In this document: positions 10,953 through 35,459 of the stretch, piece after piece
Layout of the letters: each line of letters opens with the position of its first letter
How positions within the stretch are numbered: the first letter of the stretch is position 1
Assembly: GCF_001194135.2 (NCBI RefSeq)
Contig: NC_068983.1
Location: 13,008,248-13,050,332 of the forward strand
Direction of reading: 5' to 3'
DNA: 42,085 bases
Source of the DNA: Octopus bimaculoides
Taxonomy: Eukaryota
Program-made: the position numbers and the translations under genes
The notes under the pieces: model-generated
Told to the model about the DNA's origin: nothing
Database searches by the model: none
What the model saw: the letters and a program-made list of their open reading frames with translations, nothing else

Positions 10953-12945
10953 CAGATGATTATGGCAAAAAGCCAGAAGATCTGAAGATTTGTGAACAGA
11001 AATAAGTAGTTCGAGGAGAATAGATTGTTCAAAAATAACCCGAATAATAATAATAATAGTAATAATAATAAGGTAAAACGAGTTTAGGAAAATGCCAAAC
11101 CCCGCAACAGTGTGTGTCCAAGGTCTCTGACTGAAGAATCTTCCAAGTATACATAGTTATATACAACCATGATTTTATTGACTACGTGGAAAATGGCACA
11201 TCAACATGGATGACGATAGGAAGGACGGTACTGATAGAGAATGAGAAAGAAAAGAGATGGGAAGCCGGCAATCATATACGTATTACTCAGTTTACTATTG
11301 CTCTGGAAATTATTAACTGGCCTCACAGGAGATGAAGTATATAATCTTCTGTAAAAGGAGAATCTACTGACAGAGGCCAAAAAAAAAAAAAGATGTAGGA
11401 AGAAATCATGGAGAACTGCAGGCTTTCTACTAGTTCTCACACTACTGGCTGTTGGAGTGTCTGAGGACGACTGCAGTCAGTAAAAAGATAAAAAACTTTT
11501 TGGAGAAAGCAACGAGACTATGGGCAGTCGAACTGTCATGTGCGAACGAATCGCTAGGCAACGTCAAAATATGCAAGAGGACATTCCAGGGAGACACATC
11601 ATCTCTATTACTCCAAGACATTGCACTATTGCACTAATCCCTCTGACAAGTTGTTGTTGTTGGCACTCCGTCGCTTACGACGTCCAGGGTTCCAGTTGAT
11701 CCGATCAACGGAACAGCCTGCTCGTGAAATTAACGCGCAAGTGGCTGAACACTCCACAGACACGTGTACCCTTAACGTAGTTATCGGGGATATTCAGCGT
11801 GACACAGTGTGACAAGACTGACCCTTTGAATTACAGGTACAACAGAAACAGGAAGTAAGAGTGAGAGAAAGGTGTGGTGGAAGAGTACAGCAGGGTTCGC
11901 CACCATCCCCTGCCGGAGCCTCGTGTAGCTTTAGGTGTTTTCGCTCAATAAACAATCGCAACGCCCGGTCTGGGAATCGAAACTGCGATCCTATGACCGC
12001 GAGTCCNNNNNNNNNNTCCAGGGTTCCAGTTGATCCGATCAACGGAACAGCCTGCTCGTGAAATTAACGCGCAAGTGGCTGAACACTCCACAGACACGTG
12101 TACCCTTAACGTAGTTATCGGGGATATTCAGCGTGACACAGTGTGACAAGACTGACCCTTTGAATTACAGGTACAACAGAAACAGGAAGTAAGAGTGAGA
12201 GAAAGGTGTGGTGGAAGAGTACAGCAGGGTTCGCCACCATCCCCTGCCGGAGCCTCGTGTAGCTTTAGGTGTTTTCGCTCAATAAACAATCGCAACGCCC
12301 GGTCTGGGAATCGAAACTGCGATCCTATGACCGCGAGTCCGCTGCGCTAACCACTGGGCCATTGCGCCTCCACCCCTCTGACAAGTATACTGAGAAAAAA
12401 TAGAGGACCGGTGCTTGCTAAATTCTAGACAGGACCGGAGTTTACTAAATCCTAGACGAAAAGTAATCTCCTACTTTATATAGATGACCTCGAGCTGTAT
12501 ATATGAAAAAAAAAAGTATTCAGTAAACATATTGTAATGTAATTTAGGGTAACAATTTGAGTAGTACTAATTATGAAGAAAGGCCAAGGCAACATCATTA
12601 AATCGCTTTGGAATAACGAAGGGCAGAAATATTCAGGAGTGTTGCAAGACGATAGGATAATGGAAGGAGGAATGAAAAGTCACTGAGGAATAATAGATGA
12701 GATTTAGAAAGGTCATCAAAACATAATTAAATAGTGGGAACACCATTAAAGCCCTGCCGTATTGAAGTGCTCTGCACCCTTTCTGAAATGGACAAATGTC
12801 GAGTTGCAGAACTTAATGCAGAACGCACACCACCCTAAAAAGCAATACTAACTCACTCTATCAATCCAGAAAGGGAGGTGGCAGAGGATTTCTAAACGCA
12901 GAAGTCACTGTTAATATTGCTATACAAGGTCTAAAAAATTATGTT
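10952..12945 (+). mobile_element. Degenerate R4/Dong-type reverse transcriptase fragment, interrupted by a SINE
   Basis: ENRLFKNNP; KMPN..VQGL*LKNLPSIH; WMTIGRTVLI; LWKLLTGL; IKNFLEKA..LGNVKICKRTFQGD; ALIPLTSILRK (read across the SINE TSD); NLLLYIDDLELY (YIDD 12477-12488); KYSGVLQ; LNSGNTIKA; HHPK..GGRGF..LKNYV. Confidence 0.85.
11652..12373 (-). mobile_element. Young tRNA-derived SINE, family D, with (CAA)n tail and 13-bp TSD; true length about 390 bp
   Basis: TSD ccctctgacaagt at 11639-11651 and 12374-12386. Minus-strand head ggaggcgcaatggcccagtggttag (A box) and gtttcgattccc (B box). 324 bp (11683-12006 = 12017-12340) are duplicated across a 10-N gap. Confidence 0.9.
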
Positions 12946-26037: not shown

Positions 26038-26735
26038 ATATATATCCATAATCTTTGAGAGTGTGTATGGATGTGTTTTCGATACAATTTTCTTGCCTAA
26101 TTTCCAATTTCCGTTAAATTTATTTCGTTTGTTTACGAAGCCTTGTTTTGCGCTAACCTATTTTGATACTTGTCATTTATATTTTTCTTCTAGTTTAATT
26201 ATATTTTAATACTTCCCTTCTTCATTCATACACATCTATTCGAAATATGTTTTATTAATCTCTAAGGGAGTGCATTCCATTCTTTTCACTTGCGCACTCT
26301 TTTCAATTTCTCTATTTTCTCCGCTTTTTCAATCTCTTTTTCACCGACAAATCGTTTTCATGTACTTTTTTTTCTTGTGAAATAAATCATTTATTTTCCA
26401 ATTTTCTTCTCCATTTTTACCTTTTTATCTACTATACATTTGGTTTTTCGTTCGTTTGTTTTACCTAAGATACACACACACATACATGCACACACACACA
26501 CACACACACCCACACGCATACATATACATATATGCATATATATATATATATACACATATATATATATATGCATTTTTGTATATGTATACGTGTATGTGTG
26601 TGTGTGTGTGTGCATGTATGTGTGTATGTGTATGTATATATATATATATATACATACACACATATATACACATACACACATATATACACACACATATTCA
26701 TACATATATACACACATACATATATATTTACATAT

Positions 26736-26766
<31 letters not shown>

Positions 26767-31934: not shown

Positions 31935-32048
31935 ATGTTAGAAGCCGAAACAGGCTATTGAAAACAAAAGCACTTGAAAACAAGTACCACAGTGGAATCT
32001 GTTTATGTATACTTCGTTGTAAAGCGAACTTCTGAACCATTCGGCTAC
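31935..32048 (-). mobile_element. Degenerate SINE family A head
   Basis: Reverse complement gtagccgaatggttcagaagttcgctt...gattccactgtggtacttg..caagtg...atagcc resembles the head at 2265-2170. Confidence 0.45.
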
Positions 32049-32077
32049 GTATACATACATACATACATACATACATA

Positions 32078-33945
32078 CAAATGTGACAACCGATGCGGAG
32101 TCAGTGGGCGTTAATACCGAAGGGATCACCCACATCATAAGCAGTTGTCCGAAAATATCAGCATGGTGTTATCTACCGATGAGACATGATATATCTAGGG
32201 CATTGCATGAAGATCTCTAAAGAATGACCCCCTCAAGCACAAAGAAATAAGAACCCACAGTGTGGCGGAAGCTATAAACACTCATAATAAGGAATACTGG
32301 TCGAATGTCCTAGTAAAACCTCTATAAAATGAATGCACAATAGACCTGATATAATGATTTGAGACGGAGAAGAAAAACTGAAGAAAAATTCCTCTCATCC
32401 CTTTATTATACATACGTACATTCTAACGTAGCAGATAACAGCTAGCCTTTGACTGCTATTTGGACCCCGTTGTGTCCACTACTCTGATTGGTTGGTATTG
32501 GCGCAATTTGTCTCTTACTCCGTCTCGCCAATATGCAGCGTATAACCAATCGGAGTCCCTAAGTAAGATCACGTGAGAAAGCCTGTTCTCAACCCCGGCT
32601 GAACCTATTGTATCGTTATGAAAACTTACCTTTTTTCCTCGTCTCGGGGTATTTGGCTCCAGACCTTTTAAGATCTAGACACTGACCACCCAAGACACAG
32701 CCATTTCCAGCGACAACGCCGGACATCCCGTCCGTTAGCATTACGAGCTTCCGTCTTTGTCGGCACTATCTTCTTATCGACGTCAACAACATCTCTACGC
32801 ACTCAGCTCAACCAGCAACTAGCACAAGTTCCAGCATAGCACTGCTTGTGAATTACTTCACCATGGTTAACAGCGAATATACAACCTGCGAGAACTCCTG
32901 TACCAAGTAACCCCAGGCAGTATTATTACAGCCCCAACTTCGCACATGTACCGTAACTCCGGCTCGGCATCATCGCAGCAACTTCTTGATATAGTATTTC
33001 TTTTACCGTGTACACTACGTACTAACAACTAACTGGTATTTCTCATTCTTGTTTCAATGAATATTCGTCTAACTTCTCGTTATAGACTCTTTCACTGACT
33101 CTTCATTGTTATCCTTATATGTACTTACACACACGTATATACCCATGCTTATAAACACGTACACCGTGTTCTCATGAGGGCCTGTCTATTTTTCTGTATA
33201 ACTGACGCACACACAAGCACACAAGTTAACATATCAATAAAACTTCTCTCTTCAACATTCTATTCGGTTGTGTCTCTCTCTTGGTCTCACTGTCACATAT
33301 GTATTATTCCAGCCTTCTGAATGGAGTCGTTATTAGATGGTTTCACCACGCACCAGTACCCATCTATACTGTGTACTGTTGTGGAAATCAGCTGCCCAGC
33401 TGAAGATCAGTGAAAAAGAGAATACTTTCGTTAAACTATTGAGAAGTATGCAGGAACTTTATTCAGATTACAACTTCAGTTTTATACCTGTGATTATTGG
33501 AGCCCTGGTATATGTAGCACTTTGCTTAAATACAAATCTTGAGAAATTAGGCTTCTCAAACCAGAAAGGAGAAAGCTGATTCAAAGACTACACATAGAAG
33601 CCATCACGGGAACTGTAAAATATCTGTAAAACTTTCCAGGCGTTTATCATTTAAATATATCTGAGCATATCTAGATATATAACTCTATGCATGAGAATAC
33701 ATACATTATACATACATTCAAACATGTATATGCACGTGAAGACATGCATAAACACTAAACATACAACTTTGTACGTATATATACATCCATAAATACGTAC
33801 ATAGATGCATGAATGTATACATACCTACATACATACGCACATGAATACGCTGTGTTGATGCTGAAATTCCAAAGGAGCTTTGTATCTGGCTTGGAAGCCG
33901 GCTCTTTCTCTATTAGCAAGAAAACTTGAAATAAAGCTGAATAAT
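32078..33945 (+). mobile_element. 5'-truncated R4-like REL LINE (CCHC knuckle, RPD endonuclease, 3' UTR) flanked by ACAY repeats and split by a ~1-kb insertion
   Basis: KCDNRC../EGITHIISSCPK...LPMRHD; NRPDIMI*DGEEKL [insert] CTVVEISCPA/LKISEKENTF...FIPVIIGAL...LEKLGF; terminal aataaagctgaataat (33930-33945); (TACA)n at 32048-32078 and (CA)n/ACAT at 33946-33992. Confidence 0.8.
32381..33367. mobile_element. 987-bp unclassified insertion (possible solo LTR) with 4-bp actg direct repeats
   Basis: Removing it and one actg (32377-32380 / 33368-33371) restores gaagaaaaactgtgtactgttgtggaaatc (EEKLCTVVEI). Contains CCAAT motifs on both strands (~32487, ~32547) and AATAAA (~33237). Confidence 0.7.
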
Positions 33946-33951
33946 CACACA

Positions 33952-33997
<46 letters not shown>

Positions 33998-35459
33998 TAT
34001 GTACGTGTGTGTGCGTATGTATGTATGTATGTATGCATGCATGTGTGTAGGTATGTATGCGGTATGTGTGTATGTATGTATGACGGAAATATGTAGACAT
34101 ATGTTCCAGTCGGAATTCATGTCGGGATTTTGATGCAACATTGATTCACACTCGTTGGAACGTATATGGATATATATAAATGATAAATGTAAAATTCCGG
34201 TATGCAATAATGTGCAGTTTATAATCACTGTATGATTATGGGCTCTGTATATCCGCCTGTCGTTTATATAAGTGCACATTTTCGCAAAGACTTTTCTTTA
34301 CAAAACCATTTCAATAAGTATGCATTGAACATCTTGATACAAAAATCGAGTAATTTTAACAAGGCTTATCGTAGCTTACACTTCATTCTACTATCTGCCT
34401 TTCTGAATTTCAAATTGTATTTGAATAGTACAGAAATATTTACGGTATATTTTTTTATATATTTATTTAAGTAGATATCAATGTTGTTATTTGGATTTTA
34501 TATTTTCTTTCCCTATTATTTTTAGTTTCACACGAATATCTCTCTTTAGTCTTTTCAATGTATTCTGATTATTATACATCTCAAAAATATTGATACCATA
34601 TTAATGTGGTGTTATATATTTGCATTTTATTATGTACTTCTGTTCACTCTTATCTTCTAATGTGTTGAATTCATTATTCGTTAGTTTTTTTTTATGTTTG
34701 AAAAATGTCATTCTTGGAAACCTTTGCAGATTACGAATAAGTATAGTTGTGGTGAGAAATTATAATTATTTCAGATACTAATAAATGATTTTCTCAGAGA
34801 AATAAACTGAAAAATTTTGTAGGGAAAATAAATATTACAAAACAACTATATTATTTCATGCTTTTGTTATTTCGTTGTTTGTTAGAACTGTTTTCCATGC
34901 TATGTTTGTTTCTAATAAGTATTAAAAAAAAATAACTTTTATGCAGCACACTTTGACATTTTCTTCATAAAATATTGATTGCAGCCTTTTCAAGTTTTCA
35001 GCTATTTCTAAAAGATACGTCGTCATAGTATCAAAAGGTCATTAGGTACAAAGAATATTAAAAAAAAAAACATAAACCAAAGTAGTAACAAACAGTTTCA
35101 TTATTTTTTCTAAGAAAATAAACAACATAGAAAAAATAAAATCATTCAGCAGGCTACATTTATATTACATATATATTATTCTCTATCTTCTTCATGTTTT
35201 ATCTATTTATATACATTTTATATATTTATATACATTTTATATATTTATATACTCGAATATTTTTTAAAAGAATAAAGAGGCTTAGTTAATATATTCCACA
35301 AAGATTTCGTAGTGCGTTGATCCGAGGTTTCTGTCCTGTTCATGACAGCTGTGTATGTCAAGATCAGAAGTGATAGAGAATCTGATTTTAGGAACGGTAC
35401 ACCAACAGAAACATCAGTTGAATATGTAATATGCAACCTCCGACTACATCTACATTTAC

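Follow-up and report, generated by a model that had tools for sequence, protein, structure and literature searches.

A LINE lineage with a restriction-like endonuclease that very likely inserts into ACAT microsatellites, traced from a broken copy in Octopus bimaculoides

A 42,085-nucleotide stretch of the Octopus bimaculoides genome (contig NC_068983.1, positions 13,008,248 to 13,050,332; here called the window) holds a fragment of a long interspersed nuclear element (LINE) lying between ACAT-like simple repeats, which raises the question of whether the lineage it stems from selects such microsatellites as its insertion site. A first-pass annotation of the window had proposed a lineage with a restriction-like endonuclease (REL or RLE) that inserts into ACAY or ACAT repeats and is separate from a TAA-specific relative in the same window, and this proposal is supported by nine insertion junctions and by phylogenetic trees. 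We consider it very likely that the lineage inserts into (ACAT)n arrays in one fixed orientation, tolerating ACAY, and that the window copy is a broken remnant of it. Anatomy, flanks, orientation, conserved catalytic residues and phylogeny were observed directly and are described below.

The fragment, at 32080-33945, is a dead, 5'-truncated LINE copy with a REL domain (Table 1). The closest protein matches of the window come from Octopus. Of an element that measures about 4.2-4.4 kb when intact, roughly the final 880 nt survive. As first annotated, it begins directly after a TACA-type run: the (ATAC)7.2 array ends at 32079 and homology of the open reading frame (ORF) to intact relatives starts at 32082 (CDNRC...). 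The annotated passage of the 3' end into (CA)n/ACAT repeats was right as to the end at 33945 and the adjoining (CA)24, and had overlooked that the repeat beyond, (TG/GTAT)n, carries ACAT on the opposite strand. The window copy terminates with ...gaaataaagctgaataat and its O. vulgaris relative L001 with ...aaataaactgaataat at the identical nucleotide, which fixes the 3' boundary of the element. A profile of the 95-nt 3' tail matched the window copy with E 1.5e-24, L001 with E 3.3e-26 and L002, a second O. vulgaris copy, with E 2.6e-15; neither this profile nor a blastn self-search revealed a further copy in the window.

Within the ORF, the decayed zinc knuckle reads CDNRC.., TEGITHIISSCP. The degenerate CCHC region and LPMRHD (TEGITHIISSCPKIS..LPMRHD at 32116-32193) are accompanied by NRPDIMI, with the PD of the PD-(D/E)xK nuclease, around 32340-32362. 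Stops and a frameshift disrupt this first part, and one frameshift and several stops the second, which retains the original stop codon (33652-33654). The stops and frameshifts throughout the ORF, a 987-bp insertion and an ACAT-rich stretch inside the 3' untranslated region (UTR) had all been missed in the first-pass annotation. The window copy itself is an inert fossil. As the window has no second copy, relatives were fetched from elsewhere.

Table 1. Features of the window (positions 1 to 42,085) and flanking repeats of the nine copies with readable junctions. TRF, Tandem Repeats Finder.
Feature or copy	Position	Strand	5' flank	3' flank	Basis
(ATAC)7.2 array, 5' flank, presumed remnant of the target microsatellite	32051-32079	.			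TRF and sequence
ORF fragment A, truncated just upstream of the zinc knuckle	32080-32380	+			Six-frame translation; tblastn (P0005, L006 C-terminus); protein alignments
Unrelated 987-bp insertion splitting the endonuclease ORF	32381-33367	.			ORF break; comparison with intact relatives
ORF fragment B (CTVVEISCPA.., KISEKEN, FIPVIIGAL, LEKLGFS, GTVK)	33372-33654	+			Translation; tblastn; DNA alignment with L001
3' UTR part 1, ending ...gcatgagaat	33655-33688	+			Alignment with L001
Degenerate ACAT-rich array internal to the 3' UTR	33689-33850	+			TRF rows 33697-33850; alignment with L001 and L002
Conserved 95-nt 3' tail, ending ...aataaagctgaataat, the element 3' end	33851-33945	+			nhmmer profile from three copies
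3' flank: (CA)24 with one CATA unit (33946-33993 in all), then (TG/GTAT)n	33946-34095	.			TRF and sequence
Dong-like REL fragment, 5'-truncated, 20 kb from the window copy	10368-10888 within 10309-10951	+	(AAT)19.7	(TAA)21	
Window copy			(ATAC)7	(CA)24, one CATA unit	
L001, O. vulgaris, truncated at KISEKEN			(CCAT)n-CATACATACATAC (ACAT part also given as ACATACATAC)	gactgACATATATAT	
L002, O. vulgaris, different subfamily, truncated inside the reverse transcriptase			(CCAT)n(ACAT)20	(TA)n-CATACATATAT	
L004, ENA assembly			(ACAT) about 50	(ACAT)3	
L006, JGI metagenome, intact ORF			(CATA)22	(ATAC)18	
L008, Argonauta hians			(ACAT)15	ATACACACACACACACATTCATAC	
L009, ENA assembly ERZ25878469	3505-7805 of its own locus		(TACA)66	(ACAT)34	
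L010, ENA assembly, intact 1158-aa ORF			(AT)n(ACAT)13	(CATA)13	
L013, Logan read assembly, intact 1155-aa ORF, 38% identical to L006			(CATA)n	(ACAT)n	

Eight copies with readable junctions were added to the window copy. Their sources are Octopus vulgaris, Argonauta hians and five assemblies of metagenomes or reads, and they represent at least seven families with amino-acid identities of 38-57%. Two further loci, L003 and L012, were left out of this set for unreadable junctions or a contig that was too short. A sense-strand ACAT repeat abuts the 5' junction in all nine copies. At the 3' junction, five copies have ACAT (L004, L006, L009, L010 and L013) and two an ACAY/CA run (the window copy and L008). 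Orientation is identical throughout, the sense strand of the element lying on the ACAT strand and not on the ATGT strand. Because the 5' ends vary between copies, some of which are full length and others truncated at differing points, the arrays do not belong to the element itself. The contigs of L006, L010 and L013 end within arrays; as contigs break at any flanking repeat, this introduces no bias towards ACAT. With the same repeat on the flanks of copies that include differently truncated ones, and with a fixed orientation, the lineage shows two features of microsatellite-specific LINEs, although the three Octopus copies are imperfect on the 3' side.

The background was taken from 117 kb of flanking DNA of the window and the fetched loci, which contains 12 ACAT arrays, six per strand. 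This corresponds to a P of about 5e-4 that a sense-strand array ends within 10 bp upstream of a random point, against nine of nine junctions observed. The proposal thus survived the comparison with background that the first-pass annotation had suggested as a check on ACAY enrichment at the 5' junctions. This comparison also bears on the explanation that LINE fragments simply survive in or near abundant ACAT, CA and TA microsatellites and encode no specificity. The window DNA would suit such passive accumulation, as it is microsatellite-dense (more than 160 TRF rows across 42 kb; 34% GC, with numerous N gaps), and the process has been described for Drosophila Waldo-A/B near CA repeats (PMC3812793). 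Exact abutment in every copy at this background rate, the same orientation in all nine, the persistence of the pattern across unrelated assemblies and in families down to 38% identical, and a sister family with a different repeat, (ACTT)n, on both sides make passive accumulation barely credible.

The variable 5' ends are equally relevant to the reverse relation, in which the arrays are products rather than targets: the 3' ACAT would be a templated tail, and the 5' run would be added or expanded at integration. In favor of such a process, short tandem repeats are a frequent ending of LINEs, the 3' arrays start exactly at the element end, and the Octopus copies carry ACAT on the 5' side only. 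However, the 5' arrays reach 200-260 bp, contain variant (CCAT)n blocks or adjoin (AT)n as in ordinary genomic compound microsatellites, and are found next to 5' ends truncated at differing points. No mechanism is known to us by which long repeats in a set orientation would be added to the 5' junction of a LINE. We therefore regard an origin of the arrays from the element as highly improbable and retain insertion into existing ACAT arrays as the explanation.

The flanking repeat also tracks the lineage. L005 (ENA ERZ25878469), a near-full-length element of about 4.3 kb, has (ACTT)n on both sides (2824-3038 and 7331-7447) and nests within the ACAT clade together with L009 (bootstrap 88), which comes from the same sample; this is as expected if specificity is encoded by the element. 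By flanks and tree position, L005 and L009 represent a putative natural target switch, with (ACAT)n and (ACTT)n sister families in one sample. The first-pass annotation had recommended the TAA- and ACAY-flanked copies of the window as a natural pair for comparison. The TAA-flanked relative is real, and its location between AAT and TAA arrays is the classic picture of TAA-specific insertion; L005 and L009 are closer to each other and more informative.

In a neighbor-joining tree of 1047 columns with 100 bootstraps and LINEs of the apurinic/apyrimidinic endonuclease (APE) type as outgroup, the ACAT-flanked families are monophyletic (bootstrap 100) and ACAT-flanked members stand on both sides of the basal split of the clade (bootstrap 100). 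A tree of the REL domain groups the window copy with L001 (84) within the ACAT clade (97), and the TAA-flanked copy of the window with the TAA-flanked L007 (100), separate from the ACAT clade. The placement of L008 inside the clade was taken from the reverse transcriptase tree, and its position in the REL tree was disregarded. Between the ACAT clade and the TAA-flanked copy in the window, identity in the REL domain amounts to 38% across 87 aa (E 4e-18). Homologues of this domain were found in O. vulgaris, O. bimaculoides, Argonauta hians and many ORFs of ENA metagenome assemblies, and a scan of prokaryotic genome contigs with the REL alignment gave 62 pattern matches and no relative. A representative search returned 802 clusters at E<=1e-30, mostly about 30% identical and full length, which indicates that the ACAT clade is a small branch within a large superfamily.

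The sister of the ACAT clade is L011 (bootstrap 100), which is also the nearest relative found outside it (27% identity, E 4.5e-73). L011 (ENA ERZ12289977 NODE_3847, 1-4143) is an intact RLE LINE of 1242 aa inserted in 28S ribosomal DNA (rDNA). The insertion duplicates 13 bp, gtgacgcgcatga, which lie some 27-39 bp downstream of the R2 site. We take this position, between the R2 and R1 sites, to be the R4 site. The first-pass label 'R4-like' is reasonable for the clade, though a putative one: L011 as its sister and the identity with TAA-flanked copies serve as surrogates for a tree that includes reference sequences of R4, Dong and HERO. In surveys of octopus repeats, abundant LINEs of about 4.2 kb carry the name 'Dong-R4' (PMC13282606). 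For R4 and Dong, a self-cleaving ribozyme similar to that of hepatitis delta virus (HDV) has been reported at the 5' end (PMC3774820). A crude HDV-like descriptor matched L011 exactly at the first base of the element (position 55) and none of six full-length ACAT/ACTT elements; 8 of 140 shuffled sequences matched, and divergent ribozymes could escape so simple a descriptor. Rfam likewise gave no ribozyme for the region and seven loci, with all matches below gathering scores and microRNA models on microsatellite arrays as the best of them.

Intact relatives encode a single ORF of 1133-1162 aa. Its product starts with a predicted three-helix domain, continues with the reverse transcriptase and a CCHC zinc knuckle, and ends in a restriction-like endonuclease of the PD-(D/E)xK type. 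Pfam detected RVT_1 and a sub-threshold zf-RVT match in them and no APE domain (Exo_endo_phos). In an alignment of ten full-length proteins, C967, C970, H979 and C984 of the zinc knuckle, RH(D) at 996-998 and the nuclease residues N1045, P1047, D1048, E1063 and K1079 are invariant or nearly so. The window copy retains NRPDIMI, VVEISCP and SEKEN in its broken ORF. Searches of PDB sequences with the intact relatives placed R2 proteins at the top (E 1.6e-21). The AlphaFold model of one of them, P0125, has a mean predicted local distance difference test (pLDDT) score of 75.7 and an alpha/beta nuclease fold at residues 1021-1105. With this model, Foldseek returned R2 target-primed reverse transcription complexes first (E 4e-26 to 8.5e-21, about 900-1145 columns), followed by human L1 ORF2p. 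Domain content and predicted fold identify the elements as members of the RLE-type (R2-group) non-long-terminal-repeat retrotransposons. The N-terminal approximately 70 aa are predicted to form a three-helix bundle (pLDDT 82.6). A Myb-like identity of this bundle was not established, the best PDB match having an E of 4.7.

Several points weigh against insertion into ACAT arrays. The sample consists of nine copies and is not a genome-wide census, and no empty pre-insertion site was recovered. The 5' run of L001 has only 2.5 ACAT units, which follow (CCAT)n, and the three Octopus copies have no clean ACAT at their 3' end, where the window copy has (CA)24, L001 gactgACATATAT and L002 (TA)n. In L003 from Argonauta hians the junctions are unreadable owing to an insertion resembling a short interspersed nuclear element (SINE) between a short ACAT run and the element. 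Sequence-specific recognition and cleavage, including the choice of the domain that would read the DNA, are inferred by analogy with R2; that the N-terminal three-helix domain reads the DNA sequence is a guess from a model without significant structural match.

The unclean 3' flanks in Octopus could have arisen by decay of old arrays (ACAT to ACAC or ATAT takes one transition), by insertion into compound arrays, or through a looser ACAY specificity. In a rival reading, octopod elements would have a looser or different target in place of (ACAT)n as such: ACAY, compound arrays of the AC/AT type, or ACAT arrays at their downstream edge. The 3' flanks fit this, with (CA)24 and one CATA unit in the window copy, ATACACACACACACACATTCATAC in L008, (TA)n-CATACATATAT in L002 and gactgACATATATAT in L001, and the window has many compound arrays of the form (AC)n(ATAC)n(AT)n, such as that at 26470-26766 (TRF). 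However, all cephalopod copies have ACAT at the 5' end, these copies are old and degenerate so that the one transition together with slippage may have altered their flanks, and both flanks are clean ACAT in young intact relatives. A deviating octopod specificity therefore seems unlikely, though it deserves more weight than an origin of the arrays by chance or from the element, and ACAT arrays with some tolerance for ACAY remain our preferred target.

Further observations concern the 5' flanks. In L003, a SINE-like repeat headed by (CAT)n lies at 7989-8130, where it separates a short run of ACATACATACAT from the related LINE copy downstream, and may be a later insertion at the junction. (CCAT)n blocks occur at three independent loci from two assemblies, L001 (4080-4140), L002 (8905-8927) and L009 (3554-3628), either within the 5' ACAT array or immediately upstream of it, and may be a common mutational derivative of ACAT arrays. 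By eye, the window copy and L001 seemed to have a tRNA-derived SINE head in common in their 5' flanks; this was rejected, as ARAGORN predicted no tRNA and blastn found no similarity.

Following the R2 analogy, insertion would proceed by target-primed reverse transcription. While attached to element RNA by way of the 3' UTR, the protein would recognize the repeat duplex in one orientation and its endonuclease would nick the ATGT strand. The freed 3' OH would then prime reverse transcription starting at the RNA 3' end; if this end has a few ACAU units, their pairing with the nicked strand may, speculatively, assist. Early termination would leave 5'-truncated copies such as that in the window, which a later 987-bp insertion split and stops and frameshifts degraded throughout.

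Among the LINEs known to be microsatellite-specific are Dong, an RLE element of the R4 clade (with R4 and Rex6) aimed at (TAA)n, and Waldo, an R1-clade element of the APE type aimed at (ACAY)n, together with Mino, Kibi and Koshi (PMC3812793). Dong elements of Bombyx, Anopheles and Biomphalaria (PMC3812793) resemble the ACAT clade in having a single ORF with reverse transcriptase, zinc knuckle and C-terminal RLE, and a microsatellite on both flanks. They differ in their target, TAA instead of the tetranucleotide ACAT, and in the ribozyme reported for Dong (PMC3774820), of which none was found in the six full-length ACAT/ACTT elements. R4 of nematodes would be linked to the clade through L011, the nearest relative found outside it, which sits in 28S rDNA; the R4 target is rDNA, whereas that of the clade is a microsatellite, and L011 carries the HDV-like motif, which was not found in the ACAT elements. 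Waldo of Anopheles and Forficula (PMC3812793) has the same or nearly the same target repeat, ACAY. In contrast to the ACAT clade, which has a C-terminal PD-(D/E)xK nuclease and no APE, Waldo has an N-terminal APE, and APE-bearing LINEs fall outside the clade; the shared target would thus be convergent.

The NeSL-related Togen of fish, aimed at (TG)n, and some HERO families are microsatellite-specific as well (PMC4640811). They share with the ACAT clade the RLE type and a microsatellite target other than TAA, and are distinguished from it by the TG repeat of Togen and by the names of their clades; the ACAT lineage may nevertheless belong to HERO. Since RLE LINEs with non-TAA microsatellite targets are already known, the kind is not new. 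No RLE LINE aimed at ACAT was found described in the literature, searched outside Repbase and Dfam, where prior annotation is possible. Octopus surveys report 'Dong-R4' LINEs as abundant and recently active and are silent on their targets (PMC13282606, PMC8967140). R2, the 28S-specific RLE LINE with cryo-EM structures (8GH6, 8IBW, 9NL2/3, 9DOU), is the best match in sequence and fold among solved structures, has a similar overall architecture and serves as the model for nicking and target-primed reverse transcription. It differs by an identity of about 15-18% and by zinc fingers and Myb at the N-terminus, where the ACAT clade has a single predicted three-helix domain.

A broader picture would be that of an old R4-related RLE clade, spread over several unrelated assemblies including octopods, which reads (ACAT)n, has switched at least once to (ACTT)n with both kinds in one sample, has a formally undescribed target and converged with Waldo. 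We offer this picture tentatively and, taken as a whole, lean slightly against it. Site-specific RLE retrotransposons, R2 foremost, are in development as gene-insertion tools, and their site choice is a live question (PMC13580325). The clade is useful in this respect, with a simple 4-nt target, many intact members (38-57% identity) and a switch from ACAT to ACTT between close relatives, the comparison of which is a tractable way to find target-reading residues. If the reading is true, it offers a compact natural system for the DNA choice of R2-like proteins and a second, independent origin of ACAY targeting beside the APE-type Waldo, and accounts for part of the association of tetranucleotide microsatellites with repeated flanking sequence in host genomes.

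The ORF of the window copy halts after ...EEKL at 32381 and is picked up with CTVVEISCP... at 33372. Intact relatives read straight across this point (...EEKLCTVVEISCP...), so that the intervening 987 bp are a later insertion. A 4-bp direct repeat, ACTG, at 32377-32380 and 33368-33371 bounds it and resembles a target-site duplication. The inserted sequence has neither terminal inverted repeats nor long direct ones, matches nothing in the rest of the window or the fetched loci, and gave no RNA family in Rfam. Two motifs similar to CCAAT boxes, at 32481-32493 and 32544-32556, form an inverted pair in it.

The 3' UTR of the subfamily formed by the window copy and L001 looks composite (window 33655-33945, L001 4330-4577): an end ...atgagaat, an internal (ACAT)n array and the 95-nt tail, whereas the L002 subfamily has the tail alone (10545-10640). 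The internal ACAT array is accordingly a trait common to the window copy and L001 that L002 lacks, and the end of the first 3' UTR part is similar to true 3' ends elsewhere, such as that of L006 (...tgagaagtgat, then ATAC). Read-through that began in one copy, crossed its target array and reached a tail-only copy may have produced such a 3' UTR, which would thereby have captured a target array.

An AATAAA-N-CTGAA motif at the end of both the ACAY- and the TAA-flanked copy had been pointed out in the first-pass annotation. The motif is present at both places, but makes weak evidence. The remaining families of the clade do not conserve it. AATAAA-N(0-4)-CTGAA has three matches in the window against 0.34 expected, the third (34801) in unrelated AT-rich DNA. 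A function as a signal was rejected on these grounds, and the motif was treated as a coincidence resembling a poly(A) signal.

Downstream of the element, at 33946-34040, (CA)n meets (TG/GTAT)n head-on and forms a long imperfect palindrome; Rfam matches of this palindrome to microRNA families were all below gathering score and were discarded as low-complexity noise. Elsewhere in the window, at 11683-12340, a 334-bp unit occurs twice with 100% identity across an N gap (12007-12016), and this duplication is probably an assembly artefact and not biology.

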